Shown one piece after another: positions 7,401 to 57,166 of a stretch of DNA of 64,000 bases. Each line of letters begins with the position of its first letter. Position 1 is the stretch's first letter. The stretch comes from Diplonema japonicum (Eukaryota; Protista; Euglenozoa: Diplonemea), in NCBI GenBank assembly GCA_964019335.1, contig OZ025749.1, positions 186,001 through 250,000 on the forward strand, read 5' to 3'. A model generated the notes under the pieces. The model did no database searches, was not told the DNA's origin, and saw only the letters and a program-made list of their open reading frames with translations. Made by a program: the position numbers and the translations under genes.

Positions 7401-9053
7401 CGACTTCACAACGGCCGTGACAGTCGAGAGACGTGACAGAGCCAAATACCTGGGGATCACCCTGGACGCCGACTTAACCTTCGAAGCCCATGCTCGAGAC
7501 ATTGTCAAGAGGTACGACAAGCGCATTCGCATACTGCGGCTCCTCTCCGGTTCATCCTGGGGCAGTTCTGCTGCATCACTCAGATCCTTGTACCTGGCCT
7601 ATGTCCTGCCGGTGTTCACCTACTCGATGAGGCATCTTCTTCGCGATGATGACCACCCAGGACAGGAAGACGATGTGCACGAAGCACGCGGAGGCGGCCC
7701 GTCGTATCACAGGGTGCGTCAAAAACACCTCCACCTCAGCCGTCATGTGCGAAGCCCGCTTACGCCCCCTCGACCTGATGGCCGATGCAGCGTCTGCTGT
7801 CCTATGGCAGAGGGCGCTAAGATGGGAAGGGACCCCGGTGAACAAAGTGGTCAGGGGTGCGGCGACCACAGGATGGACGAAAAGAGCGCTGGACACGGCA
7901 AGGAAATCCGGGCTCGGAACGGCGGCCTCCCAGCTCTTAGGGAGCACAACGAAGGCACCACCCTGGGTGGAAGGTATCCGAGTAGACCCCTACGCCACCG
8001 ACACACGGAGGGCCCTACCCGACGACGTAAGGGCGGCTGCGGCTGCGAAAAAACTGGCCGAGATTCCCAGCGATGCCTTGGTTGTGTACACGGACGGCTC
8101 GGTAGCGGGAGGAAGAGGAGGTGCAGGGGTCGCCATCAAGGTCCCTGGCCTGGACTTCACCCTCACCACCTCGCATGGGGCCGGCGCGGTCTCCACACCC
8201 ATGTGCGCCGAAGGCACCGCTATCCTGAAGGGGCTGCAGGAAGCCGGGGAGGTGTACAGGACGGCCGCGAGTCTGCGGGGGCGCCCCCTCTACCTGCTCA
8301 CGGACTCCCAATCGATGCTAAGGGGGCTCGCTGGTGGCCCCGGCCGGCAGAGAGAAATCGCGGACAGACGGATCTGGGACGCCGCTTCGTGGCTCAGGAC
8401 CAAGCGCTCTGGAGACGTGCATTTCTGGTTTGTTCCCTCTCACTGCGGTGTAGCGGGGAACGAACTCGCTGACGGAGCTGCCAGGGACGGTCTGGCGAAA
8501 CAATCCTGTGGAGTCAGCTACCGCTCCAGCAAAGCGGCCGTGAAGGCATGGCTGAGGGGAGCAACGCGCGCGAGGTACGGCAACGACGCTCCAGGCCATC
8601 ACAGCCTCGTTACGAATGGCGACAGTCTCCCACTCCCTCCCCTCTGTAGGAGGGACGAGGTCCAGATCATACGACTCCGGACCGGGCAAACTCCCCTGAT
8701 GAGAGGGTACCTTCAGCTCAGGGGCCCCCTCAGGGCTTCGAGGGATCACCACCTCACCTGCCCCGCATGCGGCGTTCACTCTCCGCTAGACGCCGATCAC
8801 CTGCTCAGGAGCTGTCCTTCTCTGGCCCCCGCTGCGAGAACCTTCTTCGACACCAGGCTGCCGCTCCGCGCGCTGCTTTCCAAGCACTCCGCCGAGGTCT
8901 GCGCCTTCATCGAGGCCTCCGGGCTCTTAACATGGTCCGAGTGTGGGATCCTCCCCCCGACCAACGCTGCTCAAGGGTGAACATGAGCCCAAAATAGACC
9001 CCCCCCTTTTTCCCCTTTTACCTTTTCCATTTCCCAAACTCTCTCTCTCCCCC

Positions 9054-9084
<31 letters not shown>

Positions 9085-9349
9085 ACACACACACTCAAAA
9101 CGGGCCAAAGAACGCCTCCCAAGAGATGGTCACGGATGGCCGGGCGCAGGCGCAGCTCGAGGTCTTCTGCGTTGAATCTCGAGGGGTTCGCCCCGCATGT
9201 AATCAGCCGAGTCGGCTGTCCCACGCAAGGGGAACGGAGAGCCAGAGGGATGGTCCAACCCAAGTGGTGGCCCTCTTGGTTCCTCCAGACAAAAGACTGG
9301 AACACACCCCCCACACCCCCCAGTTTCCCCCCAGTGGTTATTATTGCAA
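4485..9349 (+). mobile_element. Non-LTR retrotransposon family A, copy A1: 5'-truncated and frameshifted
   Basis: Colinear with A2 from ~18240 to its end; ORF1 tail, APE, RT and RNase H; ends ...CAGTGGTTATTATTGCAA like A2. 5' boundary uncertain by about 10 nt. Confidence 0.9.
5021..8980 (+). pseudogene. A1 ORF2 (APE-RT-RNaseH-CCHC) broken by single-base frameshifts near 5519 and 7630
   Basis: ORFs 5021-5860, 5785-8472 and 7646-8980 join into a homolog of A2 ORF2: TWNCNS, IQET, GDFNAH, GSDH, DFSKAFD, PQGSVLGP, YADD, YTDGS, SHCG.GNE.AD. Frameshifts may be decay or sequencing errors. Confidence 0.85.
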
Positions 9350-9369
9350 TTTTTTTTTTTTTTTTTTCC

Positions 9370-9408
9370 AACCAACGATTCTAAAGCTACAGTTTCTGTA
9401 CTTTATTG
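9370..9408 (+). other. Complete 39-nt spliced-leader exon AACCAACGATTCTAAAGCTACAGTTTCTGTACTTTATTG at the 5' end of element B
   Basis: Length 39; ends in the conserved euglenozoan CAGTTTCTGTACTTTATTG; AACCAACG start as I recall for diplonemids (trypanosomatids have AACTAACG). Confidence 0.92.
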
Positions 9409-9424
9409 TTTCTGTACTTTATTG
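9409..9424 (+). other. Relic SL (SL nt 24-39, TTTCTGTACTTTATTG)
   Basis: Exact copy of the SL portion after its internal CAG. Confidence 0.9.
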
Positions 9425-9519
9425 GTGTCCGACCGTGCCAATAAAGTTCACACAGCAACGGTTTGAAAAGAAAATACAAATATTGGAAGTTGAAGCGCGA
9501 CACAGATCAGCAACGTAAA

Positions 9520-9594
9520 GGAGAAGAGAAGAGAAGAGAAGAGAAGAGAAGAAAAATCGAGTCATATCAGATCATATCAGATCATATCAGATCA
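9520..9594 (+). repeat. (GAGAA)n and (TCATATCAGA)3 repeats in the B 5'UTR
   Basis: Directly visible. Confidence 0.85.
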
Positions 9595-9636
9595 CAGCAA
9601 ACACATTGACAATCTAAGCAACCGCGTCAGTCTAAG

Positions 9637-11880
9637 ATGGACGTTCACAAAGCTTTGAAGGGGTACGGGATGACAGCCCGCGGGAAGGGGTACGGGATTG
9701 GAAACGGAAACTCCTTCTACGGAGTGGTCGGAGAGAAGACGGGAAAGAAGGGGAGCGACGTTAGGCGCCGCATGATACAAGAGCTGCGAGGAAGCGAGGA
9801 GTACCGGGCGAGTGTCATCGGAGACTACGACCTGTACTGCTCCCAGCACGCCAGGGAGGGGACCGCCGCGGACCCGGTTACCATCCAAGCCACCGCCCGC
9901 GCACTGAAGACCGACATCCACCTGATTACGGCCGACGACGGCGCCCTCATCGTCTCCCCTATCGTGGGAGAGTCCAAGTCCAAGAAGCAGCCCATCCACG
10001 TCGCCTTCGACGGCCGGGCATACCTCAACGCCACGGAGCCGTTCAACGTGAACGTGCTGAAGAAAGCTATGCAGCAGTTCAAGCTGCCACGGGTCGGGAT
10101 TCCAACCTCAGACGGAGAGGCGAAGGCATGGAGGGGACCGAACAGCAAGCCACCACGGAAGGAACCGCAGGCAAAGAAATGCTGGCTCCTCGAGCAGGGA
10201 CAGTTCGACCTACCCTTCATAGAGTGGGAAGAGCTGGTGGCAGGGAAAGATGGCATAGCCATCGCGACCGAGGTCAACGTGGAGGAGGCAGAAAAGATGC
10301 CCTGGGACGGGAACAAGGCAGTCCTCCTCAAACGCAACGGCAAGGGTCGATACGAACACGACGTCGTGCTCAAGGCGGCTGGAGAGTACTCGAACAGGAC
10401 AATGTTCTTGCACGTACTGAGCGGAAAGATCTCGCGCTCTCAAAAAAACAAAAACACGGTGGGTATTGACCTGGCCGCGATGTACACGCGGGTAGCTTTC
10501 GTCGTCTCGAAGACGCACACCCCAGCCCAGACTTGGGAGAGGGTGACCTCCGAACCCCGCAAGCTGGTCCAGGAGATGCTGGGCTGTAAGACGATCCACA
10601 GGATCGACAAGCACATGGATGGACCGGCCCCAAGGGTTGACGTGCTCGTCACGATCGCAACCGAGAACCGCCGCCGCCTCGTAAGTGCATCCGGGAAGAT
10701 GGGGATCTTCGTCAAGCCGAAGGACGTGGAGAAGTCCCCTGTCGCCTGGCTCCCGAAGGAGATCACTCTGGAAGAGGCACTCGAGCTGGCGGAGACTGAG
10801 AAGCAGGGGTTAGCGCTGCGCGAATCCGACGGCCGTCTCGGGGTGAGGACATCGGAGGAGAGGAAAACCACGCTCCTCGACAAGGTATTAGGCGAGGAGG
10901 AGCGACAACGCGGGCAGCATGGGGAGCCCAGGTGGCGTTTGTCGGGACTGTACGGGCAGTGCGGAGCCGAACACGTTGAGGCGATACTCGAGGCGATTAA
11001 GTGGGAGGCCGTCCCACTACACGGCGGATGGTGCAACAGCATGAGGTGCTGGTACATCCGAGGGGGCGAACCCCCAACCACGTCACTGAAGATCACGTCC
11101 CCAACTGGGCGGGTCCTCAACTGCAGGATAGCTCCCGACGTTAGAAACCCACCCACCAAAAAGACACCGCCAGCTCAGTCCTGGGGAAGGCCGAAAACGG
11201 GGACCACAAACAACGCGGGCAAGTCGTACCTCGGAGCAGTGACGGGGTCCTCTCAACCAGACCACAAACCACCAGCTGCAGGAAAGAAGGTTGCCCCTAC
11301 GGGTAAAGCCGCCCCACCGAAGTCCGGTAAGTCGCCCACAACATCGAAGAAAGCCGATCCCCCGGCCTTTGAGGACCGCCTCACAGCAATCGAAAACGCA
11401 CTTCGTAAACTTGCAGGGGAACCGGTCAGCGACGTCAAGCCGCCGGCTGAGGTGGTCAGTCTACGGAGGGAGAACGCGGAGCTACGGGAGGAGGTCCGGC
11501 AGATGCACATCCAGATGGCCGCGCTCACCGAGCAAATTAAGAGACTCACGGAAGCGACGCTCTCGAAGCCCGTCCCCGGGAACCGGGCCCCGATGATGCG
11601 CCCTGCTGCCGGGGAGGAGATGATGGACGACTCCGAAGATGACTTGGGTCCCCCCCCAACTGACGATGACACCGACATCGACTTGGACGAGGGCCCCGCC
11701 GACATTGACGACTGCCTGGGCAAGGGCATCTGCCACGTCTACAACGGGACATATCAATGCTGGAAGGGTGTATGCCACTACTGCGGCGGGAACATCACAA
11801 AGAACAACCCAGCACAGACCTGCATATTACCAGACTGCAAAAGGGTAAAATGCCGCGGGTGCGAACAATGCGAACAATGA
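9637..11880 (+). CDS. Element B ORF1: OTU-like pseudo-domain, central core, coiled coil, C-terminal Cys/His finger
   Basis: GNGNSFY...PIHVAFDG..Y; heptads LRRENAELREEVRQM; CHVY..CHYCGG..C..DC..CRGC. Confidence 0.8.
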   Translation: MDVHKALKGYGMTARGKGYGIGNGNSFYGVVGEKTGKKGSDVRRRMIQELRGSEEYRASVIGDYDLYCSQHAREGTAADPVTIQATARALKTDIHLITADDGALIVSPIVGESKSKKQPIHVAFDGRAYLNATEPFNVNVLKKAMQQFKLPRVGIPTSDGEAKAWRGPNSKPPRKEPQAKKCWLLEQGQFDLPFIEWEELVAGKDGIAIATEVNVEEAEKMPWDGNKAVLLKRNGKGRYEHDVVLKAAGEYSNRTMFLHVLSGKISRSQKNKNTVGIDLAAMYTRVAFVVSKTHTPAQTWERVTSEPRKLVQEMLGCKTIHRIDKHMDGPAPRVDVLVTIATENRRRLVSASGKMGIFVKPKDVEKSPVAWLPKEITLEEALELAETEKQGLALRESDGRLGVRTSEERKTTLLDKVLGEEERQRGQHGEPRWRLSGLYGQCGAEHVEAILEAIKWEAVPLHGGWCNSMRCWYIRGGEPPTTSLKITSPTGRVLNCRIAPDVRNPPTKKTPPAQSWGRPKTGTTNNAGKSYLGAVTGSSQPDHKPPAAGKKVAPTGKAAPPKSGKSPTTSKKADPPAFEDRLTAIENALRKLAGEPVSDVKPPAEVVSLRRENAELREEVRQMHIQMAALTEQIKRLTEATLSKPVPGNRAPMMRPAAGEEMMDDSEDDLGPPPTDDDTDIDLDEGPADIDDCLGKGICHVYNGTYQCWKGVCHYCGGNITKNNPAQTCILPDCKRVKCRGCEQCEQ

Positions 11881-11973
11881 CTCCATGAGGGCTCCCCCCA
11901 AACCCACCCCCCAAACCCATTCCCTCCGCCCCGTTCCCATCCTTCCAAATACAATCCGATACGCTTATCTGAC

Positions 11974-14900
11974 ATGAAATTTGAACGTCTCACCGAACAG
12001 GGTATCGAACCCCACCCCGGACCAGAGCCAGAACACGAGAAATTCACCATTTTCACACACAACGGCTCATCACTTAACAACAGGCTGAGCGAGTACTCCA
12101 CCGTCCTCCCGGACGCATTCTGCATCCAGGAGACAGCCCTCACGGCTCAGACGCAGCTGGAAATCGAACACGTGCTGAGAGACGATGACTGGGGCAAACG
12201 ATACGCCAGATTCTGGAGCAAGCCACAGCCAGGCAGGGAGTCCAGTGGTGTCACATCTCTGACGATAGCGAAACGGGGTGGTCTAGGAACCCTGGTGAAA
12301 AAACCACGTACGGCGGTGCGCTGTGAAACGAATGGGCCGCACAGGGACAGGTGGTCACACGTGAAGATCTCACTCGATGGAAGCAAACGGTGGCTTCACC
12401 TGATCAACGTCTACTGCCACTCGGGTCAGGACCAAGCCAAGACGAAATACCGTGAAGAGCTTCTCCACTACATCCTTTGCCGTCTTAAGTTCGAACTGGG
12501 AGACGTGCCTGTGGCCGTGGTGGGCGATTTCAACACGGACGAAGTACGATCCCCCACGTTAAGGAAAGCTATACAGACAGACTGGGTAGACGCCGCTGCG
12601 TTCTGTGCAAGAAGGGATGGTGTACAGGCGGAGGACACGTTCGTTAGGACCAACTGCAGCACGAGGATTGACAGGGTCCTGCTGAATAACATCGCGGCCC
12701 AAGGTCTCGAACATTGCGGAGTAAGCGATATGATCACCGGGTCGGACCACCGATGCTTGTCGGTGACACTCAACATCCCAGCTTTTCGTCAAGAAGTCCT
12801 GAGGTACACCATCCCACAGGAGATACCGAAGACCAAGAAGGCGCCTGGCGAGGTGGCGAAGGCACTGATGCAGAAGTCGAGGTACCGGGAGTTCATAGCA
12901 GCACAGGAGCCCACCGAAGCTTTCTCGGAGATATCAGACCTCGCAGAGGAGTACCTATTACATGGGTACAAGGGGCCGACGCGCAGCGTGTACACCGGGA
13001 GAGGCAAAGTACGGGAACCTACGAAATCGGAGCTAAGTGCGAGGTCGGCGGAGTCGGCGGTCGGAGCGGCATCGAACAGACAACAAAGACTGGAAAAGCT
13101 GAAGCACAAGATCCGCAGTGCGCAACAGCAAATGCTAAGGCTTTATGAAAACGGACACTGCGGTCCGCTGCCGGTAGAGTTACGGAACGTCCTCAGAAAT
13201 ATTGCGACACTAGGAGAAGAACTGAAGGTTGACAACTGCCAGGTGGACGCGACAGGGGGTATCGACGGCATCAGGGAGGAGCTGGACATAGCAGAGGACT
13301 TCGCTCAGGGAATGCTATCAGAGCTACTCCAATACCGCAAGAGAATGCAGACGAAGGCCTACGAACGCTCAGTCCGTGCTGACTTTGGGAAAGAACGCAA
13401 GCACATCACAGCCTGGGTCAGAGACCGCCCAAACCAGAGAACGGACGTGGTTGAGGTAGCAGACGGGGGGGTGACGGCGAACCTACAGGAAATGGACAAG
13501 GTGATGCGGAACGCGTGGTCGGGCGTCTTCTGTGCGCGAACACTCGAGGAAGAGCCACAGTATGAGCGGTTTGCACAACGTTACGGGGACCTGATCAAGA
13601 AAGCCCCAATGGCACGGACTCCCATCACAGCAGAACAGCTGAGGGAAGTGATCAGGAAGAAGCCGGAGAAAGGAGCATGTGGCGTGGACGGTTGGCGGAT
13701 GAGTGAACTGAAGCGTCTCCCAACGAGCATCCTGAAGGCTTTCGCAGACCTCTTCAACCTGATCGAGGAAACAGGCCAGTGGCCGAGACAGATCACGACA
13801 GCACTGGTGTCCCTGATTCCGAAGGGTGAGGGGTCAGCACCACTGAATCATCGTCCCATCACAGTGACCAGCACCATCTACCGCTTGTGGGCGTGTACGA
13901 GGCTGAAGGGTGTCCTTGACTGGCAAGAACGCTGGATCACGCCGAGACAGCACGGGTTTCGACCCAAACACAGTACGACAACTGCCCTCATGGAGTTATG
14001 TACCAAGCTGGAACTAGCTCTGGTGGAAGGAGAACCGCTGGAAGGACTAGCCCTAGACTTTCGAAAATGCTTCGATCTAGTGCCACAACGGCTGTCTCTC
14101 GACCTCATGGACGCCCTGGGGATGGACCAATCCATAGGGAGAGCACTCCAAGGGATGTACACCCAAATCACAAGGAGGTTCAAGTACCCCATAGGAGTGG
14201 GAGAAACATTTGAGACAACGAACGGCATTCTCCAAGGATGCCCCCTGTCAGTCATCGTCGTCAACGCCCTGTTGTCCATCATGGTGCGGGCAGTCGAGCA
14301 AGTCGCGCCAGACGCCGAAGTGCTAGCCTACGCTGACGACGCATACCTGCTGGCAAAGCTGCGTGGCTCACTACAAGCTGCGGTCAATGGGACATTGGAG
14401 TTCTGCGACCTGACGGGGATGGAAATCAACAAGGAGAAGACTGTTGGTTTCGGCACTGCTGAAGATTTCAAGTCGAAAGTCATAGGAAACCGAACGGAGA
14501 TGAGGAAAGGCTTGGAGGTCGCGGTACCCTACAAGACGGTGACAGACCTCTGCGGACTGGGGGTGAAGATCAACACACGCAGGACAGGAACGACGTGGAA
14601 CAAACCGACCACGGGGGCGCTTGGCTCGCTGGACCGACTGGGGGGCACAAGGATTGCTTTCGAAACCAAAGCACACTTGGTCAGCACGACGGTCCTGCCA
14701 TCTTGCCTATACAGTGGGCCGTTCTCCCCTCCATGTGATGAGGCACTCAAGAAGCTAACGACGAAGATCACTTGTAACCTGTGGGGCCCTCATCACCGTG
14801 GACGGTCGCCCACCGCGGTAAACACAGTCCTGCTGAAGGGGCACACCAATGACCCCCTTTCCTACGTAATGTACCACTCCCTGAAGGTAGTATCCGGAGC

Positions 14901-16167
14901 ACTCGATGACAGTCGGCTACGGCAGAGATGCATGCAGATCGCTGCGGGGTATGACGCGGGTTCCATCCCGATGGGGCCGGTTGGCAACCTGGTCTGCCGG
15001 TGGCTTCCCCGAATAGGATGGAGTTGGGCGCAGCTACTAGGTTGCAACACATCTTGGGCCGAACGCGGACACATCTTTAGAGAGGTGGTGAGGAAGGCCC
15101 GAAGTAGGACGCTGGCGGTCGAGAGGAGCACGATAAGCGGGATAGAGCCGGGGGCGGACCCCAAGACGAACCGATTATGGAGGACGGCCAAGGACCCGCT
15201 CATGTCCTACAGCCTGAGACGAGTGATCGCAGGAGGGGTTCCCTACCTAAACCCGCACGCAAATGCGAAGCGAAAGAGCGTCCCACTGGCGCCTGAAGGT
15301 GACGACAACGGTGACGACGAGGAGAACATGGGCCAGGCACCAACGACGGAGGTATCGCACACGCAAGGATTCAGATGCGACCTGTGCAAGTCTCCACACC
15401 CGGACACGGTGACCTTACTCCGCCATCAGCTGTATGAGTGCGCCTGTGCACAAGAGGAACTGGCACTAGACGGAATGGAGCCGTTGCGCAACAGATCAGG
15501 ATGGCCCCTATGTCTGGAGCTGCACGCGATACTGCCGAGGGGGCATGTCTTCGCACACCTGGAGAAGCTGCAGCGATACATGGCTGTGGTAGTCGGGAAA
15601 CGGGATGTGGAGCTCATGCAAATAGACAACGCCAGCACACAGCCGCTGCCGTGGGTACGCAATGTGGAGGGAAGGAGATGCCTCGTGCCAACGGCGGGGG
15701 AGCTCGAAGGAGTGGGAGGAATCGTCGCAGAATTCCTGAACCCGCTGCTGCAGTGGTTGTCACAGCTACGATGGGTGAAGGAGGACACCAGCTCTGAAGT
15801 GTCAGCGGTGGAATTGGCCATCGACTTCGAATGGACGACAGGCAAGTTACTGGGGGGTCTGCTGGAAGATAGGGCTCGCAAGATCAAAGCACTGATAAGA
15901 AAGCTGAACGCGGCATGCAGGGCACGGAAGAAGCCACGCCCCTTCCCAGCAGATGAACAGAAGAGAGTGAAGTCCCTCATCGCAATAGGTGGGAAGACGG
16001 CTATGGGTTTCGCCAGGAGGCCCATCTTCGCCACCCACACCACTCACGACAAGCTGATGGAACTGAAAGCCGCTTACAAGCGAGACCGCATCACACGACT
16101 CCGCAAGACGCTCAAGGCCTCGATTGGAACGAAAGCAATGCTCCAGAAGGGGAGTATAAAAAGATAA
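11974..16167 (+). CDS. Element B ORF2: 2A-like peptide, APE endonuclease, reverse transcriptase, CCHC knuckle; no RNase H motif seen
   Basis: GIEPHPGP; THN, IQET, GDFN, RID, GSDH (APE); LIPK, RPITV, QHGFR, DFRKCFD, QGCPLS, YADD (RT); CDLC..RHQLYEC. Confidence 0.9.
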   Translation: MKFERLTEQGIEPHPGPEPEHEKFTIFTHNGSSLNNRLSEYSTVLPDAFCIQETALTAQTQLEIEHVLRDDDWGKRYARFWSKPQPGRESSGVTSLTIAKRGGLGTLVKKPRTAVRCETNGPHRDRWSHVKISLDGSKRWLHLINVYCHSGQDQAKTKYREELLHYILCRLKFELGDVPVAVVGDFNTDEVRSPTLRKAIQTDWVDAAAFCARRDGVQAEDTFVRTNCSTRIDRVLLNNIAAQGLEHCGVSDMITGSDHRCLSVTLNIPAFRQEVLRYTIPQEIPKTKKAPGEVAKALMQKSRYREFIAAQEPTEAFSEISDLAEEYLLHGYKGPTRSVYTGRGKVREPTKSELSARSAESAVGAASNRQQRLEKLKHKIRSAQQQMLRLYENGHCGPLPVELRNVLRNIATLGEELKVDNCQVDATGGIDGIREELDIAEDFAQGMLSELLQYRKRMQTKAYERSVRADFGKERKHITAWVRDRPNQRTDVVEVADGGVTANLQEMDKVMRNAWSGVFCARTLEEEPQYERFAQRYGDLIKKAPMARTPITAEQLREVIRKKPEKGACGVDGWRMSELKRLPTSILKAFADLFNLIEETGQWPRQITTALVSLIPKGEGSAPLNHRPITVTSTIYRLWACTRLKGVLDWQERWITPRQHGFRPKHSTTTALMELCTKLELALVEGEPLEGLALDFRKCFDLVPQRLSLDLMDALGMDQSIGRALQGMYTQITRRFKYPIGVGETFETTNGILQGCPLSVIVVNALLSIMVRAVEQVAPDAEVLAYADDAYLLAKLRGSLQAAVNGTLEFCDLTGMEINKEKTVGFGTAEDFKSKVIGNRTEMRKGLEVAVPYKTVTDLCGLGVKINTRRTGTTWNKPTTGALGSLDRLGGTRIAFETKAHLVSTTVLPSCLYSGPFSPPCDEALKKLTTKITCNLWGPHHRGRSPTAVNTVLLKGHTNDPLSYVMYHSLKVVSGALDDSRLRQRCMQIAAGYDAGSIPMGPVGNLVCRWLPRIGWSWAQLLGCNTSWAERGHIFREVVRKARSRTLAVERSTISGIEPGADPKTNRLWRTAKDPLMSYSLRRVIAGGVPYLNPHANAKRKSVPLAPEGDDNGDDEENMGQAPTTEVSHTQGFRCDLCKSPHPDTVTLLRHQLYECACAQEELALDGMEPLRNRSGWPLCLELHAILPRGHVFAHLEKLQRYMAVVVGKRDVELMQIDNASTQPLPWVRNVEGRRCLVPTAGELEGVGGIVAEFLNPLLQWLSQLRWVKEDTSSEVSAVELAIDFEWTTGKLLGGLLEDRARKIKALIRKLNAACRARKKPRPFPADEQKRVKSLIAIGGKTAMGFARRPIFATHTTHDKLMELKAAYKRDRITRLRKTLKASIGTKAMLQKGSIKR

Positions 16168-16585
16168 CCCCCCCCTAACCCACCCAAGGGCGGCCCTCCA
16201 TGAGGGGGTTTGTCCTGCACTTTGAGTTTTTTTTTTTTTTTTTTTCACACTCACCAATGATTCGCTCAATAGGAGCAATACCTCCCTGGGGGGCTTTCCG
16301 CCGGAGGTTCCAGCCAAAGAAGGACATCCAGCTGGAAGGTAGGCCCCCGTTTTTCTCTCACTTGACTAAGGGAATAATGTAATTCAGCCCTCTTCGGCTG
16401 TCCCAAAGCAGAGCACGGGTTGGTGGGGGACCAGGGCTCCTCCTGCTTGCAGAAGCCTGGTCCTTTGCCCTCCCTATTTCCCCATGGCTTCCCTTCACCT
16501 TTTTTTCCCCTTTTCTCAGGTGTTGCTCTCCATGGCGGCCCTGCATTGGTATTTTGAAAAAAAAAAAAAAAAAAAAAAAAAAAAA

Positions 16586-16593
16586 CATGGGTA
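16586..16593 (+). other. Target-site duplication CATGGGTA (tRNA-Cys -3..+5)
   Basis: Identical to 23105-23112; directly follows B's poly(A). Confidence 0.8.
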
Positions 16594-16656
16594 AAAATGC
16601 TCTCCATGGCGGCCCTGCATTGGTATTTTGAAAAAAAAAAAAAAAAAAAAAAAAAA
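16594..16656 (+). mobile_element. Extremely 5'-truncated B copy: AAAA, last 33 nt of B, A26
   Basis: 16598-16630 is identical to 16524-16556; followed by CATGAGTA. A local tandem duplication is an alternative. Confidence 0.7.
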
Positions 16657-40547: not shown

Positions 40548-42197
40548 ATGTGGCGTGCAGCATGCTCTGTGGCCCTTGTCGGGCTGCTTGCGGTGCCTTC
40601 AGCGGCGCACCTGACTGTGGTGTGCACGGCGACGTCGCCGCAGCAACCAAACTCATTCGCCTTCTGGTTCATGACCTACGACCACAGCCCTGATGTGGAC
40701 AAGGCACCTGGGATGGTGTACATCAAGGACCCCAGTGCGAACGTGGTGCAGGCGGAGTTCTCGAACTTCTGCAAACCAGGGTCGGGGCTGCCGAAGGGAG
40801 GGGCAACGGTGGACGTGTTCGAAAACCTTTTGAAAACGCACTGCCTGGGACTGTCTGACCCGAGCGGGAGGGTCCCCATCTTCTCGGACAGCCAGCTGAC
40901 CTGCTACAACCCAGACACGAACAACCCTATCCCCCACTACGCCCTGGGGGTGACGGGGAGCACCGCCGTCGACACCCCTTACCACACGAGCGTCATGACA
41001 GACTACTACTTCGTGGTGGTGGAGAACACGAACGGGGACGTGTTGAAGTCGGGGAGCTACGTGACTTGGTTCACAGGGACGGACCAGAACATGGACCCCT
41101 GCAGCACGGACTACCCCTGCTCCCTCGCCTCGCAGGCCTGGACCTTCGACATCTCTGTGATCAACGGGGGCCCGAGGTGCAAGACGGCTCCCCCCTCTTC
41201 CCTGACGGCCAACGTGGTCCCCGCGACGCTCAGCCAGTGCGACGGGTCGGTGCTCTCCATCTTCGTGGGGGAGGTGTGCCAGGCGCAGTGCGAGGCTGGC
41301 TACTCGAAGGCCGGGGTGCTGGAGTGCGTGGACAACGGGGACGGGACGGGGTCCTGGAGCAGCGGCTTCGCCTGCACGAACGACGTTGTGTGCGAGGTAC
41401 CGTCGGCGGCGAACCAGAACAACCACCTCATCAGCCCGGACATCAAGGGAGTGCTTCCCCCGTGCGGGGCGCTCACCCCCGCGGACACGAGCTGCCCGTA
41501 CACCTGCAACGGGTTCGGACACCAGACAGGTCCCGGGAAGATCAGGTGCACCAACGTGAACGGGAAGGGGGTGTGGAAGGCGGACGTGGCTGCGGGAGGG
41601 TACGACGGATGCGCTTGGACGGTCGCCCCGCCCCCTACCCCGCAGCCCACCAATGTTCCGTGCAATGACGGGGTGGAGGTGGTGGTGGGGGCAGGACCTT
41701 CTTCTGCTGTCCTTCTCGGGACCCCTTTGGACGGGGAGGACCGCTTCGAAGGCAGTGGGGTGAGGCTCACCAGGATCCCTTCGAGCTTTCAACAGATGAG
41801 GCTGCACGTCCCCGCCCTCCCTGTGGCCGAGGGGACCTCGATGGAGCTGAAGTGCTGTGGAACGGAGGTGTGCGAGTTCGTGGTGTCCCACTACCACTGT
41901 CCTCCTTGCTCTAGAACGGTGAACGGGGGCTTCCCCTCCCTCCTTCCCCTCTCTGGTTTTACGTCCGCCTCCTGCGCACCTCGGTACGGCACCACAGAGC
42001 AGAGGATGGTCTCCTACAGGATCCAGGTGCAGCCGGGGGAGTCCGTTGAGGTCCCCAAGACCACCACAGAGGCCTCCTCTTTCGTCGTCTTCAGCCAGAC
42101 TGGGGCCCTTCCCAGTGATTGGTGTCCTGCTCTGGAGAACAGGGGTTGTGGAGGACCCTGTCCCGTCACCGTTTGCTCTTGCCACACTACCTTGTGA
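40548..42197 (+). CDS. Secreted Cys-rich protein, copy 1: signal peptide, N-domain, two sushi/CCP-like modules, PT linker, C-terminal HCPPC domain
   Basis: Signal MWRAACSVALVGLLAVPSAA; GEVCQAQCEAGY...LEC...W...C pattern. Confidence 0.8.
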   Translation: MWRAACSVALVGLLAVPSAAHLTVVCTATSPQQPNSFAFWFMTYDHSPDVDKAPGMVYIKDPSANVVQAEFSNFCKPGSGLPKGGATVDVFENLLKTHCLGLSDPSGRVPIFSDSQLTCYNPDTNNPIPHYALGVTGSTAVDTPYHTSVMTDYYFVVVENTNGDVLKSGSYVTWFTGTDQNMDPCSTDYPCSLASQAWTFDISVINGGPRCKTAPPSSLTANVVPATLSQCDGSVLSIFVGEVCQAQCEAGYSKAGVLECVDNGDGTGSWSSGFACTNDVVCEVPSAANQNNHLISPDIKGVLPPCGALTPADTSCPYTCNGFGHQTGPGKIRCTNVNGKGVWKADVAAGGYDGCAWTVAPPPTPQPTNVPCNDGVEVVVGAGPSSAVLLGTPLDGEDRFEGSGVRLTRIPSSFQQMRLHVPALPVAEGTSMELKCCGTEVCEFVVSHYHCPPCSRTVNGGFPSLLPLSGFTSASCAPRYGTTEQRMVSYRIQVQPGESVEVPKTTTEASSFVVFSQTGALPSDWCPALENRGCGGPCPVTVCSCHTTL

Positions 42198-43422
42198 TGA
42201 TGATGATGATGATGTGCGAGAAAAATAGTTGATTCCTTTTTCTTTTTTCTTCTTCTTTTTTTCTTTTACAAATCTTTTGTCTTTTAAAAAAATGATCATT
42301 TATTAACTATATGCAACTTGTGCCGAGCAAGAAATCTTAGCAGCTATTTGAAACCTTTTTTTTTGCTCGTGAGATGGCAAATAGTCTAAATAATTGTTTT
42401 TTCACCCATGTTTTTACCTTTTACCTACCCGGTAGGTAATACCTTTTTTTTCACCCCTCCCCTCCCCCTTCTTCGCTCTCTTTTTAATTTTAGAAAAAGA
42501 AGATAAGAATCGTATTTCTAAAGAAGAAAAACAAATGAAAGTCGAAGTGAAAAAGGAAAAAAAAAAGAACAAACATCCTTTTATTTGTCTCTTTTTTTAT
42601 TTCTTTTTCGTTCCTTCCTTTCGTTTCTTCTTCTTCTTCTTCTTCTTTTTCTCTCTCCCTTTTCATCTTCTCATTTCCATAATTTAATCAATTCAACCCC
42701 CTTCCTCCCCTTCCCCCCAGGGTTCCCCCCCCCCCCCCCCCCATTCGGCAACAGAGAAGGCTTTTGATATAAAATAAATAAGATAAAGGGTCCCGTCTCT
42801 CGTTTTTGAAATATGGGGGAAAATGAAAAAAGAAAAAAAAAAAAAAAAAAAAAAAGAGAAATTTTCATTATCACCCCCTCCTTCCCCTCCCCTCCGATCG
42901 TTCGCTCGTTTTTCTTCTTTCAAAAAATCGCTTAAGAAAGTCCCCTACCCTTCATTTATTGCTCTTGTTCATGATGCAAGGTTCATGCTTCCCCCTTGGG
43001 GATGATAACTTTCATTAACTGAGACAAAATGACAGGGTTTCTTTCTTATCTTCTTCTTCTTCTTTTTTTTTTTTAAATTATTATTCCCGATAAAATCCTT
43101 TTTTTTTTTAAACCCGAACATAATAGGGGTTCCCCCCACCCCCAACCCCCTACACAATTATGATGATCGAAACGCTCCGTGATGTTAGCACACGGATCGG
43201 GGTGAGACGGTGGGAAGAACATGTAAACCGGGACTTGAACCGGGTTAAAAGAACAACGTAACCGATTCTGAGCAGAGAGGATAACGAAACGGGCGATCAG
43301 ACAGTTCAAAGAAGAACAGCACGGCCACCACCACAGGTCCCACGCCTGTTCTACCTTGCACTAAACGAGCTTGAAATGATGGAGGCGCGCAGGAAAGGGT
43401 TTGAAACGGTCGCACCTACTGA

Positions 43423-43646
43423 TAGTGAAAAGAGTGAAGTCCCTCATCGCTCGCCATAGGAAAGGTACCCATTTTCACCACCCTCTCCGCGCACAAGCTG
43501 ATGGGAACTGAAAACTGCTCGCAAGCGAGAACGCATCACTCAGCTGCGCTAGACGCTCACGGCCTCGATCGGGGCGAAAGCAATGCTCCGAGAAGGGCCC
43601 ATTGCGCGGCCCTCTTTACAGGGGGCTTGTCCTGTACTTTGAGTTT
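43423..43646 (+). mobile_element. Decayed family-B fragment (ORF2 end and start of 3'UTR); repeated at ~46634, ~49846 and ~53058
   Basis: agagtgaagtccctcatcgc, caagctgatgg, gaaagcaatgctcc and tgtcctg.actttgagttt match B 15963-16230. Confidence 0.8.
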
Positions 43647-43758
43647 CTTCTTCTTTTTTCTTCTTCTTCTCGCACCCCCTTTTCTCGCACCACAAACCAG
43701 CAAAAACCAGGTTATCCCCCTTTTTTTTTAAAAAAAAAAAACCACTTCCCAAACACAA

Positions 43759-45408
43759 ATGTGGCGTGCAGCATGCTCTGTGGCCCTTGTCGGGCTGCTT
43801 GCGGTGCCTTCAGCGGCGCACCTGACTGTGGTGTGCACGGCGACGTCGCCGCAGCAACCAAACTCATTCGCCTTCTGGTTCATGACCTACGACCACAGCC
43901 CTGATGTGGACAAGGCACCTGGGATGGTGTACATCAAGGACCCCAGTGCGAACGTGGTGCAGGCGGAGTTCTCGAACTTCTGCAAACCAGGGTCGGGGCT
44001 GCCGAAGGGAGGGGCAACGGTGGACGTGTTCGAAAACCTTTTGAAAACGCACTGCCTGGGACTGTCTGACCCGAGCGGGAGGGTCCCCATCTTCTCGGAC
44101 AGCCAGCTGACCTGCTACAACCCAGACACGAACAACCCTATCCCCCACTACGCCCTGGGGGTGACGGGGAGCACCGCCGTCGACACCCCTTACCACACGA
44201 GCGTCATGACAGACTACTACTTCGTGGTGGTGGAGAACACGAACGGGGACGTGTTGAAGTCGGGGAGCTACGTGACTTGGTTCACAGGGACGGACCAGAA
44301 CATGGACCCCTGCAGCACGGACTACCCCTGCTCCCTCGCCTCGCAGGCCTGGACCTTCGACATCTCTGTGATCAACGGGGGCCCGAGGTGCAAGACGGCT
44401 CCCCCCTCTTCCCTGACGGCCAACGTGGTCCCCGCGACGCTCAGCCAGTGCGACGGGTCGGTGCTCTCCATCTTCGTGGGGGAGGTGTGCCAGGCGCAGT
44501 GCGAGGCTGGCTACTCGAAGGCCGGGGTGCTGGAGTGCGTGGACAACGGGGACGGGACGGGGTCCTGGAGCAGCGGCTTCGCCTGCACGAACGACGTTGT
44601 GTGCGAGGTACCGTCGGCGGCGAACCAGAACAACCACCTCATCAGCCCGGACATCAAGGGAGTGCTTCCCCCGTGCGGGGCGCTCACCCCCGCGGACACG
44701 AGCTGCCCGTACACCTGCAACGGGTTCGGACACCAGACAGGTCCCGGGAAGATCAGGTGCACCAACGTGAACGGGAAGGGGGTGTGGAAGGCGGACGTGG
44801 CTGCGGGAGGGTACGACGGATGCGCTTGGACGGTCGCCCCGCCCCCTACCCCGCAGCCCACCAATGTTCCGTGCAATGACGGGGTGGAGGTGGTGGTGGG
44901 GGCAGGACCTTCTTCTGCTGTCCTTCTCGGGACCCCTTTGGACGGGGAGGACCGCTTCGAAGGCAGTGGGGTGAGGCTCACCAGGATCCCTTCGAGCTTT
45001 CAACAGATGAGGCTGCACGTCCCCGCCCTCCCTGTGGCCGAGGGGACCTCGATGGAGCTGAAGTGCTGTGGAACGGAGGTGTGCGAGTTCGTGGTGTCCC
45101 ACTACCACTGTCCTCCTTGCTCTAGAACGGTGAACGGGGGCTTCCCCTCCCTCCTTCCCCTCTCTGGTTTTACGTCCGCCTCCTGCGCACCTCGGTACGG
45201 CACCACAGAGCAGAGGATGGTCTCCTACAGGATCCAGGTGCAGCCGGGGGAGTCCGTTGAGGTCCCCAAGACCACCACAGAGGCCTCCTCTTTCGTCGTC
45301 TTCAGCCAGACTGGGGCCCTTCCCAGTGATTGGTGTCCTGCTCTGGAGAACAGGGGTTGTGGAGGACCCTGTCCCGTCACCGTTTGCTCTTGCCACACTA
45401 CCTTGTGA
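43759..45408 (+). CDS. Secreted Cys-rich protein, copy 2
   Basis: Identical translation. Confidence 0.8.
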   Translation: MWRAACSVALVGLLAVPSAAHLTVVCTATSPQQPNSFAFWFMTYDHSPDVDKAPGMVYIKDPSANVVQAEFSNFCKPGSGLPKGGATVDVFENLLKTHCLGLSDPSGRVPIFSDSQLTCYNPDTNNPIPHYALGVTGSTAVDTPYHTSVMTDYYFVVVENTNGDVLKSGSYVTWFTGTDQNMDPCSTDYPCSLASQAWTFDISVINGGPRCKTAPPSSLTANVVPATLSQCDGSVLSIFVGEVCQAQCEAGYSKAGVLECVDNGDGTGSWSSGFACTNDVVCEVPSAANQNNHLISPDIKGVLPPCGALTPADTSCPYTCNGFGHQTGPGKIRCTNVNGKGVWKADVAAGGYDGCAWTVAPPPTPQPTNVPCNDGVEVVVGAGPSSAVLLGTPLDGEDRFEGSGVRLTRIPSSFQQMRLHVPALPVAEGTSMELKCCGTEVCEFVVSHYHCPPCSRTVNGGFPSLLPLSGFTSASCAPRYGTTEQRMVSYRIQVQPGESVEVPKTTTEASSFVVFSQTGALPSDWCPALENRGCGGPCPVTVCSCHTTL

Positions 45409-46969
45409 TGATGATGATGATGATGTGCGAGAAAAATAGTTGATTCCTTTTTCTTTTTTCTTCTTCTTTTTTTCTTTTACAAATCTTTTGTCTTTTAAAA
45501 AAATGATCATTTATTAACTATATGCAACTTGTGCCGAGCAAGAAATCTTAGCAGCTATTTGAAACCTTTTTTTTTGCTCGTGAGATGGCAAATAGTCTAA
45601 ATAATTGTTTTTTCACCCATGTTTTTACCTTTTACCTACCCGGTAGGTAATACCTTTTTTTTCACCCCTCCCCTCCCCCTTCTTCGCTCTCTTTTTAATT
45701 TTAGAAAAAGAAGATAAGAATCGTATTTCTAAAGAAGAAAAACAAATGAAAGTCGAAGTGAAAAAGGAAAAAAAAAAGAACAAACATCCTTTTATTTGTC
45801 TCTTTTTTTATTTCTTTTTCGTTCCTTCCTTTCGTTTCTTCTTCTTCTTCTTCTTCTTTTTCTCTCTCCCTTTTCATCTTCTCATTTCCATAATTTAATC
45901 AATTCAACCCCCTTCCTCCCCTTCCCCCCAGGGTTCCCCCCCCCCCCCCCCCCATTCGGCAACAGAGAAGGCTTTTGATATAAAATAAATAAGATAAAGG
46001 GTCCCGTCTCTCGTTTTTGAAATATGGGGGAAAATGAAAAAAGAAAAAAAAAAAAAAAAAAAAAAAGAGAAATTTTCATTATCACCCCCTCCTTCCCCTC
46101 CCCTCCGATCGTTCGCTCGTTTTTCTTCTTTCAAAAAATCGCTTAAGAAAGTCCCCTACCCTTCATTTATTGCTCTTGTTCATGATGCAAGGTTCATGCT
46201 TCCCCCTTGGGGATGATAACTTTCATTAACTGAGACAAAATGACAGGGTTTCTTTCTTATCTTCTTCTTCTTCTTTTTTTTTTTTAAATTATTATTCCCG
46301 ATAAAATCCTTTTTTTTTTTAAACCCGAACATAATAGGGGTTCCCCCCACCCCCAACCCCCTACACAATTATGATGATCGAAACGCTCCGTGATGTTAGC
46401 ACACGGATCGGGGTGAGACGGTGGGAAGAACATGTAAACCGGGACTTGAACCGGGTTAAAAGAACAACGTAACCGATTCTGAGCAGAGAGGATAACGAAA
46501 CGGGCGATCAGACAGTTCAAAGAAGAACAGCACGGCCACCACCACAGGTCCCACGCCTGTTCTACCTTGCACTAAACGAGCTTGAAATGATGGAGGCGCG
46601 CAGGAAAGGGTTTGAAACGGTCGCACCTACTGATAGTGAAAAGAGTGAAGTCCCTCATCGCTCGCCATAGGAAAGGTACCCATTTTCACCACCCTCTCCG
46701 CGCACAAGCTGATGGGAACTGAAAACTGCTCGCAAGCGAGAACGCATCACTCAGCTGCGCTAGACGCTCACGGCCTCGATCGGGGCGAAAGCAATGCTCC
46801 GAGAAGGGCCCATTGCGCGGCCCTCTTTACAGGGGGCTTGTCCTGTACTTTGAGTTTCTTCTTCTTTTTTCTTCTTCTTCTCGCACCCCCTTTTCTCGCA
46901 CCACAAACCAGCAAAAACCAGGTTATCCCCCTTTTTTTTTAAAAAAAAAAAACCACTTCCCAAACACAA

Positions 46970-48619
46970 ATGTGGCGTGCAGCATGCTCTGTGGCCCTTG
47001 TCGGGCTGCTTGCGGTGCCTTCAGCGGCGCACCTGACTGTGGTGTGCACGGCGACGTCGCCGCAGCAACCAAACTCATTCGCCTTCTGGTTCATGACCTA
47101 CGACCACAGCCCTGATGTGGACAAGGCACCTGGGATGGTGTACATCAAGGACCCCAGTGCGAACGTGGTGCAGGCGGAGTTCTCGAACTTCTGCAAACCA
47201 GGGTCGGGGCTGCCGAAGGGAGGGGCAACGGTGGACGTGTTCGAAAACCTTTTGAAAACGCACTGCCTGGGACTGTCTGACCCGAGCGGGAGGGTCCCCA
47301 TCTTCTCGGACAGCCAGCTGACCTGCTACAACCCAGACACGAACAACCCTATCCCCCACTACGCCCTGGGGGTGACGGGGAGCACCGCCGTCGACACCCC
47401 TTACCACACGAGCGTCATGACAGACTACTACTTCGTGGTGGTGGAGAACACGAACGGGGACGTGTTGAAGTCGGGGAGCTACGTGACTTGGTTCACAGGG
47501 ACGGACCAGAACATGGACCCCTGCAGCACGGACTACCCCTGCTCCCTCGCCTCGCAGGCCTGGACCTTCGACATCTCTGTGATCAACGGGGGCCCGAGGT
47601 GCAAGACGGCTCCCCCCTCTTCCCTGACGGCCAACGTGGTCCCCGCGACGCTCAGCCAGTGCGACGGGTCGGTGCTCTCCATCTTCGTGGGGGAGGTGTG
47701 CCAGGCGCAGTGCGAGGCTGGCTACTCGAAGGCCGGGGTGCTGGAGTGCGTGGACAACGGGGACGGGACGGGGTCCTGGAGCAGCGGCTTCGCCTGCACG
47801 AACGACGTTGTGTGCGAGGTACCGTCGGCGGCGAACCAGAACAACCACCTCATCAGCCCGGACATCAAGGGAGTGCTTCCCCCGTGCGGGGCGCTCACCC
47901 CCGCGGACACGAGCTGCCCGTACACCTGCAACGGGTTCGGACACCAGACAGGTCCCGGGAAGATCAGGTGCACCAACGTGAACGGGAAGGGGGTGTGGAA
48001 GGCGGACGTGGCTGCGGGAGGGTACGACGGATGCGCTTGGACGGTCGCCCCGCCCCCTACCCCGCAGCCCACCAATGTTCCGTGCAATGACGGGGTGGAG
48101 GTGGTGGTGGGGGCAGGACCTTCTTCTGCTGTCCTTCTCGGGACCCCTTTGGACGGGGAGGACCGCTTCGAAGGCAGTGGGGTGAGGCTCACCAGGATCC
48201 CTTCGAGCTTTCAACAGATGAGGCTGCACGTCCCCGCCCTCCCTGTGGCCGAGGGGACCTCGATGGAGCTGAAGTGCTGTGGAACGGAGGTGTGCGAGTT
48301 CGTGGTGTCCCACTACCACTGTCCTCCTTGCTCTAGAACGGTGAACGGGGGCTTCCCCTCCCTCCTTCCCCTCTCTGGTTTTACGTCCGCCTCCTGCGCA
48401 CCTCGGTACGGCACCACAGAGCAGAGGATGGTCTCCTACAGGATCCAGGTGCAGCCGGGGGAGTCCGTTGAGGTCCCCAAGACCACCACAGAGGCCTCCT
48501 CTTTCGTCGTCTTCAGCCAGACTGGGGCCCTTCCCAGTGATTGGTGTCCTGCTCTGGAGAACAGGGGTTGTGGAGGACCCTGTCCCGTCACCGTTTGCTC
48601 TTGCCACACTACCTTGTGA
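46970..48619 (+). CDS. Secreted Cys-rich protein, copy 3
   Basis: Identical translation. Confidence 0.8.
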   Translation: MWRAACSVALVGLLAVPSAAHLTVVCTATSPQQPNSFAFWFMTYDHSPDVDKAPGMVYIKDPSANVVQAEFSNFCKPGSGLPKGGATVDVFENLLKTHCLGLSDPSGRVPIFSDSQLTCYNPDTNNPIPHYALGVTGSTAVDTPYHTSVMTDYYFVVVENTNGDVLKSGSYVTWFTGTDQNMDPCSTDYPCSLASQAWTFDISVINGGPRCKTAPPSSLTANVVPATLSQCDGSVLSIFVGEVCQAQCEAGYSKAGVLECVDNGDGTGSWSSGFACTNDVVCEVPSAANQNNHLISPDIKGVLPPCGALTPADTSCPYTCNGFGHQTGPGKIRCTNVNGKGVWKADVAAGGYDGCAWTVAPPPTPQPTNVPCNDGVEVVVGAGPSSAVLLGTPLDGEDRFEGSGVRLTRIPSSFQQMRLHVPALPVAEGTSMELKCCGTEVCEFVVSHYHCPPCSRTVNGGFPSLLPLSGFTSASCAPRYGTTEQRMVSYRIQVQPGESVEVPKTTTEASSFVVFSQTGALPSDWCPALENRGCGGPCPVTVCSCHTTL

Positions 48620-50181
48620 TGATGATGATGATGATGTGCGAGAAAAATAGTTGATTCCTTTTTCTTTTTTCTTCTTCTTTTTTTCTTTTACAAATCTTTT
48701 GTCTTTTAAAAAAATGATCATTTATTAACTATATGCAACTTGTGCCGAGCAAGAAATCTTAGCAGCTATTTGAAACCTTTTTTTTTGCTCGTGAGATGGC
48801 AAATAGTCTAAATAATTGTTTTTTCACCCATGTTTTTACCTTTTACCTACCCGGTAGGTAATACCTTTTTTTTCACCCCTCCCCTCCCCCTTCTTCGCTC
48901 TCTTTTTAATTTTAGAAAAAGAAGATAAGAATCGTATTTCTAAAGAAGAAAAACAAATGAAAGTCGAAGTGAAAAAGGAAAAAAAAAAGAACAAACATCC
49001 TTTTATTTGTCTCTTTTTTTATTTCTTTTTCGTTCCTTCCTTTCGTTTCTTCTTCTTCTTCTTCTTCTTTTTCTCTCTCCCTTTTCATCTTCTCATTTCC
49101 ATAATTTAATCAATTCAACCCCCTTCCTCCCCTTCCCCCCAGGGTTCCCCCCCCCCCCCCCCCCCATTCGGCAACAGAGAAGGCTTTTGATATAAAATAA
49201 ATAAGATAAAGGGTCCCGTCTCTCGTTTTTGAAATATGGGGGAAAATGAAAAAAGAAAAAAAAAAAAAAAAAAAAAAAGAGAAATTTTCATTATCACCCC
49301 CTCCTTCCCCTCCCCTCCGATCGTTCGCTCGTTTTTCTTCTTTCAAAAAATCGCTTAAGAAAGTCCCCTACCCTTCATTTATTGCTCTTGTTCATGATGC
49401 AAGGTTCATGCTTCCCCCTTGGGGATGATAACTTTCATTAACTGAGACAAAATGACAGGGTTTCTTTCTTATCTTCTTCTTCTTCTTTTTTTTTTTTAAA
49501 TTATTATTCCCGATAAAATCCTTTTTTTTTTTAAACCCGAACATAATAGGGGTTCCCCCCACCCCCAACCCCCTACACAATTATGATGATCGAAACGCTC
49601 CGTGATGTTAGCACACGGATCGGGGTGAGACGGTGGGAAGAACATGTAAACCGGGACTTGAACCGGGTTAAAAGAACAACGTAACCGATTCTGAGCAGAG
49701 AGGATAACGAAACGGGCGATCAGACAGTTCAAAGAAGAACAGCACGGCCACCACCACAGGTCCCACGCCTGTTCTACCTTGCACTAAACGAGCTTGAAAT
49801 GATGGAGGCGCGCAGGAAAGGGTTTGAAACGGTCGCACCTACTGATAGTGAAAAGAGTGAAGTCCCTCATCGCTCGCCATAGGAAAGGTACCCATTTTCA
49901 CCACCCTCTCCGCGCACAAGCTGATGGGAACTGAAAACTGCTCGCAAGCGAGAACGCATCACTCAGCTGCGCTAGACGCTCACGGCCTCGATCGGGGCGA
50001 AAGCAATGCTCCGAGAAGGGCCCATTGCGCGGCCCTCTTTACAGGGGGCTTGTCCTGTACTTTGAGTTTCTTCTTCTTTTTTCTTCTTCTTCTCGCACCC
50101 CCTTTTCTCGCACCACAAACCAGCAAAAACCAGGTTATCCCCCTTTTTTTTTAAAAAAAAAAAACCACTTCCCAAACACAA

Positions 50182-52466: not shown

Positions 52467-52497
<31 letters not shown>

Positions 52498-57141: not shown

Positions 57142-57166
57142 TAAACGGTGGGGTTTTTTTGGCTGC

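Follow-up and report, generated by a model that had tools for sequence, protein, structure and literature searches.

Element B of the diplonemid Diplonema japonicum is a 6.9-kb non-LTR retrotransposon with an APE endonuclease and a reverse transcriptase (RT), which occupies positions 9370-16226 of the 64-kb stretch of DNA analysed here (hereafter the window; G000:C102:186001-250000) and whose 5′ end consists of a complete spliced leader (SL) followed at once by a truncated relic of the same leader. The SL start of this element was probably acquired through the retrotransposition of a trans-spliced mRNA, with a minority of later insertions being re-spliced at the integrated SL; the relic-free copies may derive from an RNA that begins at SL nt 1. 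Judging from the copy counts given below, the relic route is real but minor. Comparable SLs cap several other families of retroelements in this genome, and the same SL-relic junction occurs in environmental DNA of other euglenozoans.

Anatomy of element B

The body of the element begins at 9425 (GTGTCCGACC...), directly after the SL and its relic (Table 1). In the window, the 3′ half of the SL is found only at this place, as 1 exact copy plus the relic with 2 mismatches, and a shuffle control gave 0 matches in 100 shuffles. The known SL entry named “Euglenozoa 14” is presumably the SL of Diplonema. The 39-nt SL of the window is of the euglenozoan type and differs from that entry at 2 positions (PMC3795323). 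An initial annotation of this DNA had described the start of B as a whole 39-nt SL followed by SL nt 24-39, and both the coordinates and the recurrence of the junction in the genome (7 copies) confirm this description.

Table 1. Position of the features of element B and of the F4 copy in the window, first bases of SL-capped leader families, and examples of contig-end clusters
Feature	Position or first bases	Strand	Remarks
T18 run; target T-tract 5′ of B, one copy of its target-site duplication	9350..9367	+	T-rich tract on both sides in 7 B copies
“CC”, two extra nt at the 5′ junction, outside the SL and the duplicated target	9368..9369	+	In 12 of 25 B copies; missing from the 3′ flank
Complete 39-nt spliced leader (SL), first base present	9370..9408	+	Identical to the exon of tandem SL-RNA genes L003, L008, L020 and L026
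Relic SL, SL nt 24-39, which follow the CAG inside the SL (TTTCTGTACTTTATTG)	9409..9424	+	Same junction at 7 loci in 4 families
Leader (5′ UTR) of B	9425..9636	+	First 78 nt (9425-9502) conserved in all B subfamilies
ORF1, 747 aa	9637..11880	+	OTU-like match, weak and below threshold, as sole domain signal
ORF2, 1397 aa, APE-type endonuclease and reverse transcriptase	11974..16167	+	Exo_endo_phos 3.8e-09, RVT_1 6.1e-21
3′ UTR and true 3′ end of B (...CCTGCACTTTGAG)	16168..16226	+	Common end point of the alignments with 7 other B copies
T19 run; target T-tract 3′ of B, other copy of the target-site duplication	16227..16245	+	Same T-rich tract as upstream
F4 copy in the window	57203-57517 (~315 bp) within 57157-57553		T43 and cAG upstream, (TA)n and T14 downstream
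Leader family F2	GTCGTTCG...		SL-capped
Leader family F1	GTCGTCTG...		SL-capped
Leader family B′	GTATCGACC...		SL-capped
Leader families B, F3, F4, F5, F6 and F7			SL-capped
F1/F2 clusters at contig ends, examples	L005/L006 (C9:8.4-12.5k), L018 (C43:66-3104), L025/L034 (C58:505-508k), C24:7-46k		

Element B shows the features expected of a LINE, with an RT, an N-terminal APE endonuclease and dispersed copies that have unrelated flanks and target-site duplications (TSDs), except that it lacks a 3′ poly(A) or simple-repeat tail of its own. The Exo_endo_phos domain covers residues 45-259 of ORF2, and no nuclease domain other than APE was detected in B. Neither was an RNase H domain detected in its ORF2, whereas the neighbouring elements A and C carry one. 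ORF2 finds its best relative, with 67% identity, in a transcriptome ORF from EukProt, all the others staying at or below 27%.

All the B copies compared finish at ...CACTTTGAG, followed by the T-tract of the target itself and with no poly(A) tail belonging to the element. The TSDs are T-rich, as in the copies of contigs C85 (TTTGTT) and C52 ((TTCTT)n), or in runs of T14-T37, and the presence of the same T-rich tract on both sides indicates that the insertion of B takes place in T-tracts lying on its sense strand, which are duplicated in the process. Priming seems to occur on bottom-strand A-runs with a U-rich RNA 3′ end (16226-16245; loci L071-L079), which makes an unusual LINE target and tail type. 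A poly(A) at 16556 was considered as the tail of B and rejected because the region is missing from other B copies, and 16246-16650 was likewise rejected as its 3′ UTR, since it belongs to another, very abundant repeat. This segment, which lies directly 3′ of B, holds one complete and one partial copy of the 3′ end of that poly(A)-tailed repeat (...GGCCCTGCATTGGTATTTTG plus A27, present twice), and a genome search with its 3′ module returned 173 first-look candidates.

At the opposite end of the element, the leader contains a stretch (9438-9447, CCAATAAAGT) that complements the 3′ end of the SL, and a 12-bp hairpin spans the junction between SL and leader, with a minimum free energy of -19.2 kcal/mol without the relic and -23.9 kcal/mol with it. 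A scan of positions 8500-10500 with the Rfam models at E<=10 gave no ribozyme or SL-RNA family. Runs of T>=5, looked for inside B as a sign of SL-gene-like termination, amounted to 0 observed vs 0.65 expected, a difference too small to be informative. The element is oriented like the host genes of the window; across the upstream flanks of B copies, T-runs and A-runs, taken as a proxy for sense orientation within transcription units, numbered 96 vs 84 and gave no signal. Elsewhere in the window, positions 40548-55145 contain five tandem repeats of ~3.21 kb each, with long ORFs of 549 and 548 aa on the two strands, of which the + strand ORF was scanned against Pfam with no match.

Spliced leaders across the genome and in environmental DNA

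The census of SLs covered the 62.5-Mb assembly in 132 contigs. The full 39-mer, with <=2 mismatches, occurs 207 times, vs 0 for a reversed control, and the 14-mer of the SL 3′ end occurs 260 times. Nine of these 260 copies are SL RNA (6 genes and 3 SL-RNA retrocopies) and at least 4 are chance matches, while the remaining ~240 dispersed SLs cap at least 10 leader families (Table 1). Many small LINE families with leaders of 20-60 nt are also SL-capped, as is at least one retrocopy of a cellular gene (L090, epimerase-like), where the SL sits where the mRNA would carry it. The leaders of the large families all begin with G, mostly GT, a feature not to be expected from splicing alone. Apart from the SL, no motif was found to be common to the families.

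The initial annotation had proposed tabulating the 5′ ends of all B copies in the genome, and the result agrees with its reading: all of the 33 or more ends are SL-headed, the SL is the 5′ terminus, and the flanks all differ. Among the 25 B-family copies fetched, the sequence starts at SL nt 1 in 3 cases, at nt 2 in 17 and at nt 3 in 4, the last one being an old copy that is more truncated. Their 25 upstream flanks are all different, T-rich, and never the upstream region of an SL gene; the count is completed by 8 further B 5′ ends, which carry the SL as well. Moreover, no leader devoid of a preceding SL was found anywhere in the genome for families B, F1, F2 and F5. Copies that are identical over 1450 nt differ in their first bases (ccACC vs ttACC), that is, in the extra “CC” and in the first base of the SL, which indicates that the 5′ end is made anew at each insertion, at the end of the RNA and not through homology with the flank. 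The SL is 100% conserved between B and B′, their leaders being roughly 70% alike by eye. From these data we infer that the SL is a fixed 5′ module of B.

Several observations on the census stand apart from element B. The SL-capped families F1 and F2 cluster within ~10 kb of many contig ends, with the 3′ end always outward and beside (CCCGCAAA)n-like repeats; they form head-to-tail arrays there, in which short stacked SL plus leader fragments are common, and these clusters may constitute a telomere-associated retroelement system. The older F2 copies (L034 / L025, C58:506.9k) differ mainly by changes of CG to TG or CA, such as GTCGTTCGTG to GTTGTTCATG, a pattern that suggests methylation-driven CpG decay of repeats. 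A diverged 39-mer at L100 (G000:C11:677.9k), which shares only its last ~18 nt with the SL, lies directly after a B-like 3′ end and a T-run, and could be either an old decayed SL or a variant SL.

The phenomenon extends beyond D. japonicum. A scan of metagenome contigs recovered the 27-nt SL-relic junction in 7 of them, and since the 5′ halves of their SLs differ from that of D. japonicum, these contigs come from other euglenozoans. The ORFs downstream of the SL and relic encode an RT in 3 of the 4 metagenome contigs tested. One contig (L115) carries two stacked relics, in the order SL, relic of nt 24-39 and relic of nt 18-39. An SL-plus-relic element of another species (L112:239-6289) shows a UCH deubiquitinase domain upstream of the RT, and, considered together with the weak OTU-like match in ORF1 of B, deubiquitinase modules may recur in these LINEs. 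The leader of a further, unrelated environmental SL-plus-relic element (L114:2857-2900) also has, like that of B, a CAATAAA complementary to the SL 3′ end ~17 nt past the junction.

Relics, re-splicing and competing readings

The 27-mer of the SL-relic junction is present in 7 copies in the D. japonicum genome, vs 0 for the control, and these are distributed over families F1, F2, B and B′. All 7 relics start at nt 24 of the SL, and an eighth one starts at nt 18, so that, out of 38 possible positions, the relics begin only after the two AGs that the SL contains. The eighth relic (nt 18-39 after AAAG, in the B copy L049) represents the predicted use of the first SL AG. In all, relics occur in 4-5 families. 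Flanks differ from one relic copy to another, and according to trees the relics go back to at least 6 independent events. A test for clades of relic copies, as expected if a relic were passed on with no new one added, is suggestive only, with no resolution in the F1 tree and 2 of the 3 relic copies of F2 placed as sisters with moderate support. Another SL was found joined after ...CCAG inside a B′ leader (L070). Relics restricted to the positions after the two AGs are the signature of trans-splicing onto an integrated SL, and the window copy of B can thus be read as a record of at least two SL acquisitions. The initial annotation had deduced at least two cycles of recycling from positions 9370-9424, and the restriction of relic starts to these AGs upholds it.

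A second line of evidence comes from F4, a short repeat (~300-370 bp) with at least 284 SL-less copies in the genome. Among the SL-less copies listed, ~85% are preceded by AG (AG|GTGG), and a T-run lies upstream of F4 in three inspected SL-less copies and in the window copy. About 10 F4 copies (~3%) are SL-tagged, and in them the SL is joined exactly at this AG. A source of SL-tagged retrocopies can thus itself be SL-less, as in F4, where the junction lies exactly at an AG acceptor, and at least one cellular mRNA has served as a source too. The T-run and AG before F4 amount to a ready-made trans-splice acceptor, and F4 itself, as a non-autonomous partner, may be associated with a LINE that targets T-tracts, such as B.

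The history that accounts best for these patterns would start with an ancestor of B that retrotransposed from an SL trans-spliced, capped mRNA, reverse-transcribed up to its 5′ end or one base short of it. A transcript reading into such an integrated copy would be trans-spliced again at an SL-internal AG (nt 22-23 or nt 16-17) and then retrotransposed, leaving a full SL followed by a relic. Such re-spliced insertions are a minority, about 3-7% per family: 3 of the at least 44 B/B′ copies (~7%) and ~8 of the ~240 SL-tagged copies bear a relic, and the other 41 B/B′ copies, including five near-identical young ones, are relic-free. The similarity between the relic share (3-7%) and the SL-tagged share of F4 (~3%) suggests that re-splicing is a by-product route.

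How the relic-free majority propagates calls for a separate step. Trans-splicing onto an SL already integrated must leave a relic, given the TTG at the end of the SL, and because B, F1, F2 and F5 have no SL-less leaders, their masters must be SL-bearing and yield a relic-free RNA that starts at SL nt 1. With unrelated upstream flanks, any promoter has to lie within the SL or the leader. About as likely as not, relic-free propagation would then use an RNA that begins exactly with SL nt 1 of an SL-bearing master, and reverse transcription would usually stop at SL nt 2, as on authentic SL RNA. Transcription initiated at the integrated SL is the likeliest cause of such an RNA end; the integrated SL and the leader would act as an internal start module, the alternative being some processing step. 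A route through read-through RNA and T-run homology was also considered for the relic-free copies of B; it is weakened by the copies identical over 1450 nt that differ in “cc” and in the first SL base, and by the families lacking T-run flanks, which show the same clean SL start.

A broader version of this idea, which we put forward only tentatively, is that the SL exon has become a portable, heritable 5′ module of retroelements in diplonemids and, to judge from the metagenome contigs, in other free-living euglenozoans, where an integrated SL and the first bases of the leader would direct a new RNA end at SL nt 1 with no need of trans-splicing. The SL-headed, mRNA-like transcript would come either from some processing step or from the SL-gene machinery acting at an internal initiator or promoter. 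If true, whole LINE families would have no promoter of their own and would rely instead on an RNA-processing tag captured from the host.

The main competitor of retrotransposed mRNA with minor re-splicing is its strict form, already contained in the initial annotation, where B would have no promoter and each cycle would consist of a polycistronic read-through RNA trans-spliced at the AG of the integrated SL, the host supplying a new SL every time. Several data fit: relics follow both AGs of the SL, B lies directly behind a T-tract that is a possible polypyrimidine tract and is oriented like the host genes in the window, and one metagenome contig stacks two relics. Complete conservation of the SL between B and B′ despite their diverged leaders, and a 5′ end that lacks nt 1 in most copies, yet does not erode over generations, also speak for it. 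However, an SL ending in TTG makes this route add 16 or 22 nt every time, whereas 41 of the at least 44 B/B′ copies are free of any relic; there is no double relic in the D. japonicum genome, and the relic share matches that of SL-tagged F4 copies, which points to a by-product rate. The strict form is unlikely. What survives of the original proposal is that B RNA is trans-spliced and that the integrated SL provides the acceptor AG of a following round, as the AG-bounded relics indicate, although as a minor route (~7% of B/B′); that an intact 5′ end is regenerated in this way each cycle through polycistronic transcription does not hold, given the few relics, the lack of double ones and the lack of an SL-less B master.

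Splicing could also be dispensed with if the RT, on reaching the 5′ end of the element RNA, switched template onto SL RNA or an SL-bearing RNA through a G or GU microhomology, a repetition of which would add the relic. Chimeras of this sort do exist. Three whole unspliced SL-RNA retrocopies, L106 (G000:C2:150556), L107 (C30:484559) and L108 (C107:~8900), contain the exon and the intron up to the U-tail or truncated, start at SL nt 2 and stand head-to-tail with F4 or with the leader of another LINE, and they look like template-switch chimeras of the U6/L1 kind. The genome also contains stacked arrays of SL, a leader fragment of 12-15 nt and SL, and a few single copies in which the SL is joined at leader positions not preceded by AG in the relatives compared, some of them at TG microhomologies; the leaders, moreover, start with G or GT like the SL-RNA intron. 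Nevertheless, the product of a switch onto SL RNA contains the intron together with the exon, as in those three retrocopies, and not the exon alone, and of the 38 positions available for a break, the 8 relics use only those that follow the two AGs of the SL. The SL copies of F4 are joined exactly at the AG that most of its at least 284 SL-less copies possess, and the epimerase-like retrocopy has its SL in the place of that of an mRNA. We consider template switching improbable as the origin of the SL of B, still more so than the strict form above.

A further reading, after the fashion of SLACS, CZAR and CRE, would have B inserted in, or having captured, an SL-RNA gene, the sequence after the SL being a diverged intron. 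The true SL-RNA genes number 6, tandem or solo, and have a conserved upstream region (...GAGGTCCGGGAGGTT); they are single or arranged in ~350 bp repeats, and their intron (GTACCCAATC..., (GTACCCAATCTGATCC...)) has ~95 nt and ends at a T-run. The leader of B resembles this intron in starting with GT and containing CAATAAA, and the SL 3′ end pairs with the leader as it does in stem-loop I of the SL RNA. However, that CAATAAA motif, complementary to the SL 3′ end, is all they share: the similarity of the two sequences is no greater than that of shuffles (p=0.70). The initial annotation had asked for a comparison with the true SL-RNA gene, and had held that its claim would fall if the sequence after 9424 matched the SL-RNA intron. 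The comparison sets B apart, as it has neither the SL-gene upstream region, absent from all its 25 unrelated T-rich flanks, nor the same downstream sequence, and the claim stands with similarity at chance level. Furthermore, the SL of B is complete and not split at nt 11/12, and its endonuclease is of the APE type. The SLACS-like reading is largely refuted, with very little probability left to it, and the SL of B, to judge from its surroundings, is not part of an SL-RNA gene.

Just as implausible is a local artefact, be it an error of assembly or replication slippage that duplicated 16 bp in tandem. In its favour, the relic is formally a tandem repeat with a 1-nt register ambiguity, and Logan contigs of 4 sequencing runs break inside the repeated SL. 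Against it, the identical duplication occurs at 7 loci of 4 families with different flanks and in 7 metagenome contigs of other species, and the alternative 22-nt relic likewise starts after an AG. In the Logan contigs of the same 4 runs, of unspecified type, the k-mer depth of the SL is 33-80 times that of the B body, a ratio that carries no information on expression or on this junction.

Comparison with known systems

SLACS, CZAR, CRE1-2 and LINS1 are trypanosomatid retrotransposons that split the SL exon at a fixed site by means of a restriction-like endonuclease. Like B, they are euglenozoan non-LTR elements physically joined to SL sequence. Unlike them, B starts with an intact SL that belongs to the element, has its copies scattered over T-tracts and encodes an APE endonuclease; neither an insertion within the SL exon of an SL-RNA gene nor a restriction-like endonuclease, the marks of the SLACS/CZAR/CRE group, is seen in B.

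In mammals, chimeric U6/L1 retrocopies result from template switching. They find their parallel in L106-L108, where a whole SL RNA is fused upstream of an element, whereas this mechanism cannot account for the exon-only SL or for the AG-bounded relics of B.

The elements L1Tc, ingi and SIDER bear at their 5′ end the Pr77 module, an internal Pol II promoter bound by TBP and SNAP50, two factors of the SL genes, and accompanied by an HDV-like ribozyme, and whose transcripts are reported to be unspliced (PMC1874656, PMC8190864, PMC4035085). In both cases a conserved module of ~80-120 nt sits at the extreme 5′ end of a LINE within a polycistronically transcribed genome, and by this analogy the SL and leader of B would be functionally equivalent to Pr77 of L1Tc/ingi, re-creating that end with the help of SL-gene transcription factors. 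Pr77, however, is not an SL, and the module of B is composed of the SL plus a 78-nt leader, has no ribozyme among the Rfam models and is a candidate promoter. Two marks of the ingi/L1Tc group, the HDV-like ribozyme (searched with Rfam models only) and an RNase H downstream of the RT, are missing from B. If the SL does act as an internal start signal, this would bear on the transcription of the SL-RNA genes in diplonemids. The SL-capped families also offer a natural experiment on how LINE 5′ ends are re-created without gene-specific promoters, with ~240 copies and with obligate-SL families to be set against families with SL-less sources. They likewise provide an indirect read-out of RT behaviour at the SL cap, as nt 2 is the first base in most copies and in each of the three SL-RNA retrocopies.

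The closest precedent is the recycling of mRNAs in dinoflagellates (Slamovits & Keeling 2008), which, in the account given in PMC3229502, leaves a full SL followed by an SL truncated at an internal AG, and which is explained there by trans-splicing, reverse transcription, integration and re-splicing at the integrated SL. The full SL directly followed by an AG-truncated SL in B reproduces that arrangement. A stack of two relics is seen in metagenome contig L115 of another species, and the D. japonicum genome has no double relic. Differences are that the present case belongs to Euglenozoa, in another supergroup and with a different 39-nt SL, and that it concerns mainly autonomous non-LTR retrotransposons rather than cellular genes, with entire families in which no 5′ end other than the SL occurs. 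The relic frequency is also lower here (3-7%) than in dinoflagellates, where it reaches about 22-25% of SL-bearing ESTs (PMC3229502). The combination of trans-splicing and mRNA recycling was called apparently unique (PMC3229502), and in the full-text literature searched the relic model appears only for dinoflagellates and Perkinsus, with no SL-capped retrotransposons or SL relics in Euglenozoa. SL relics have so far been treated as a dinoflagellate peculiarity, and the same fossil is now found in Euglenozoa, in one complete genome and 7 environmental contigs, providing a sequence-only marker of retrotransposition through mature mRNA in a second supergroup.
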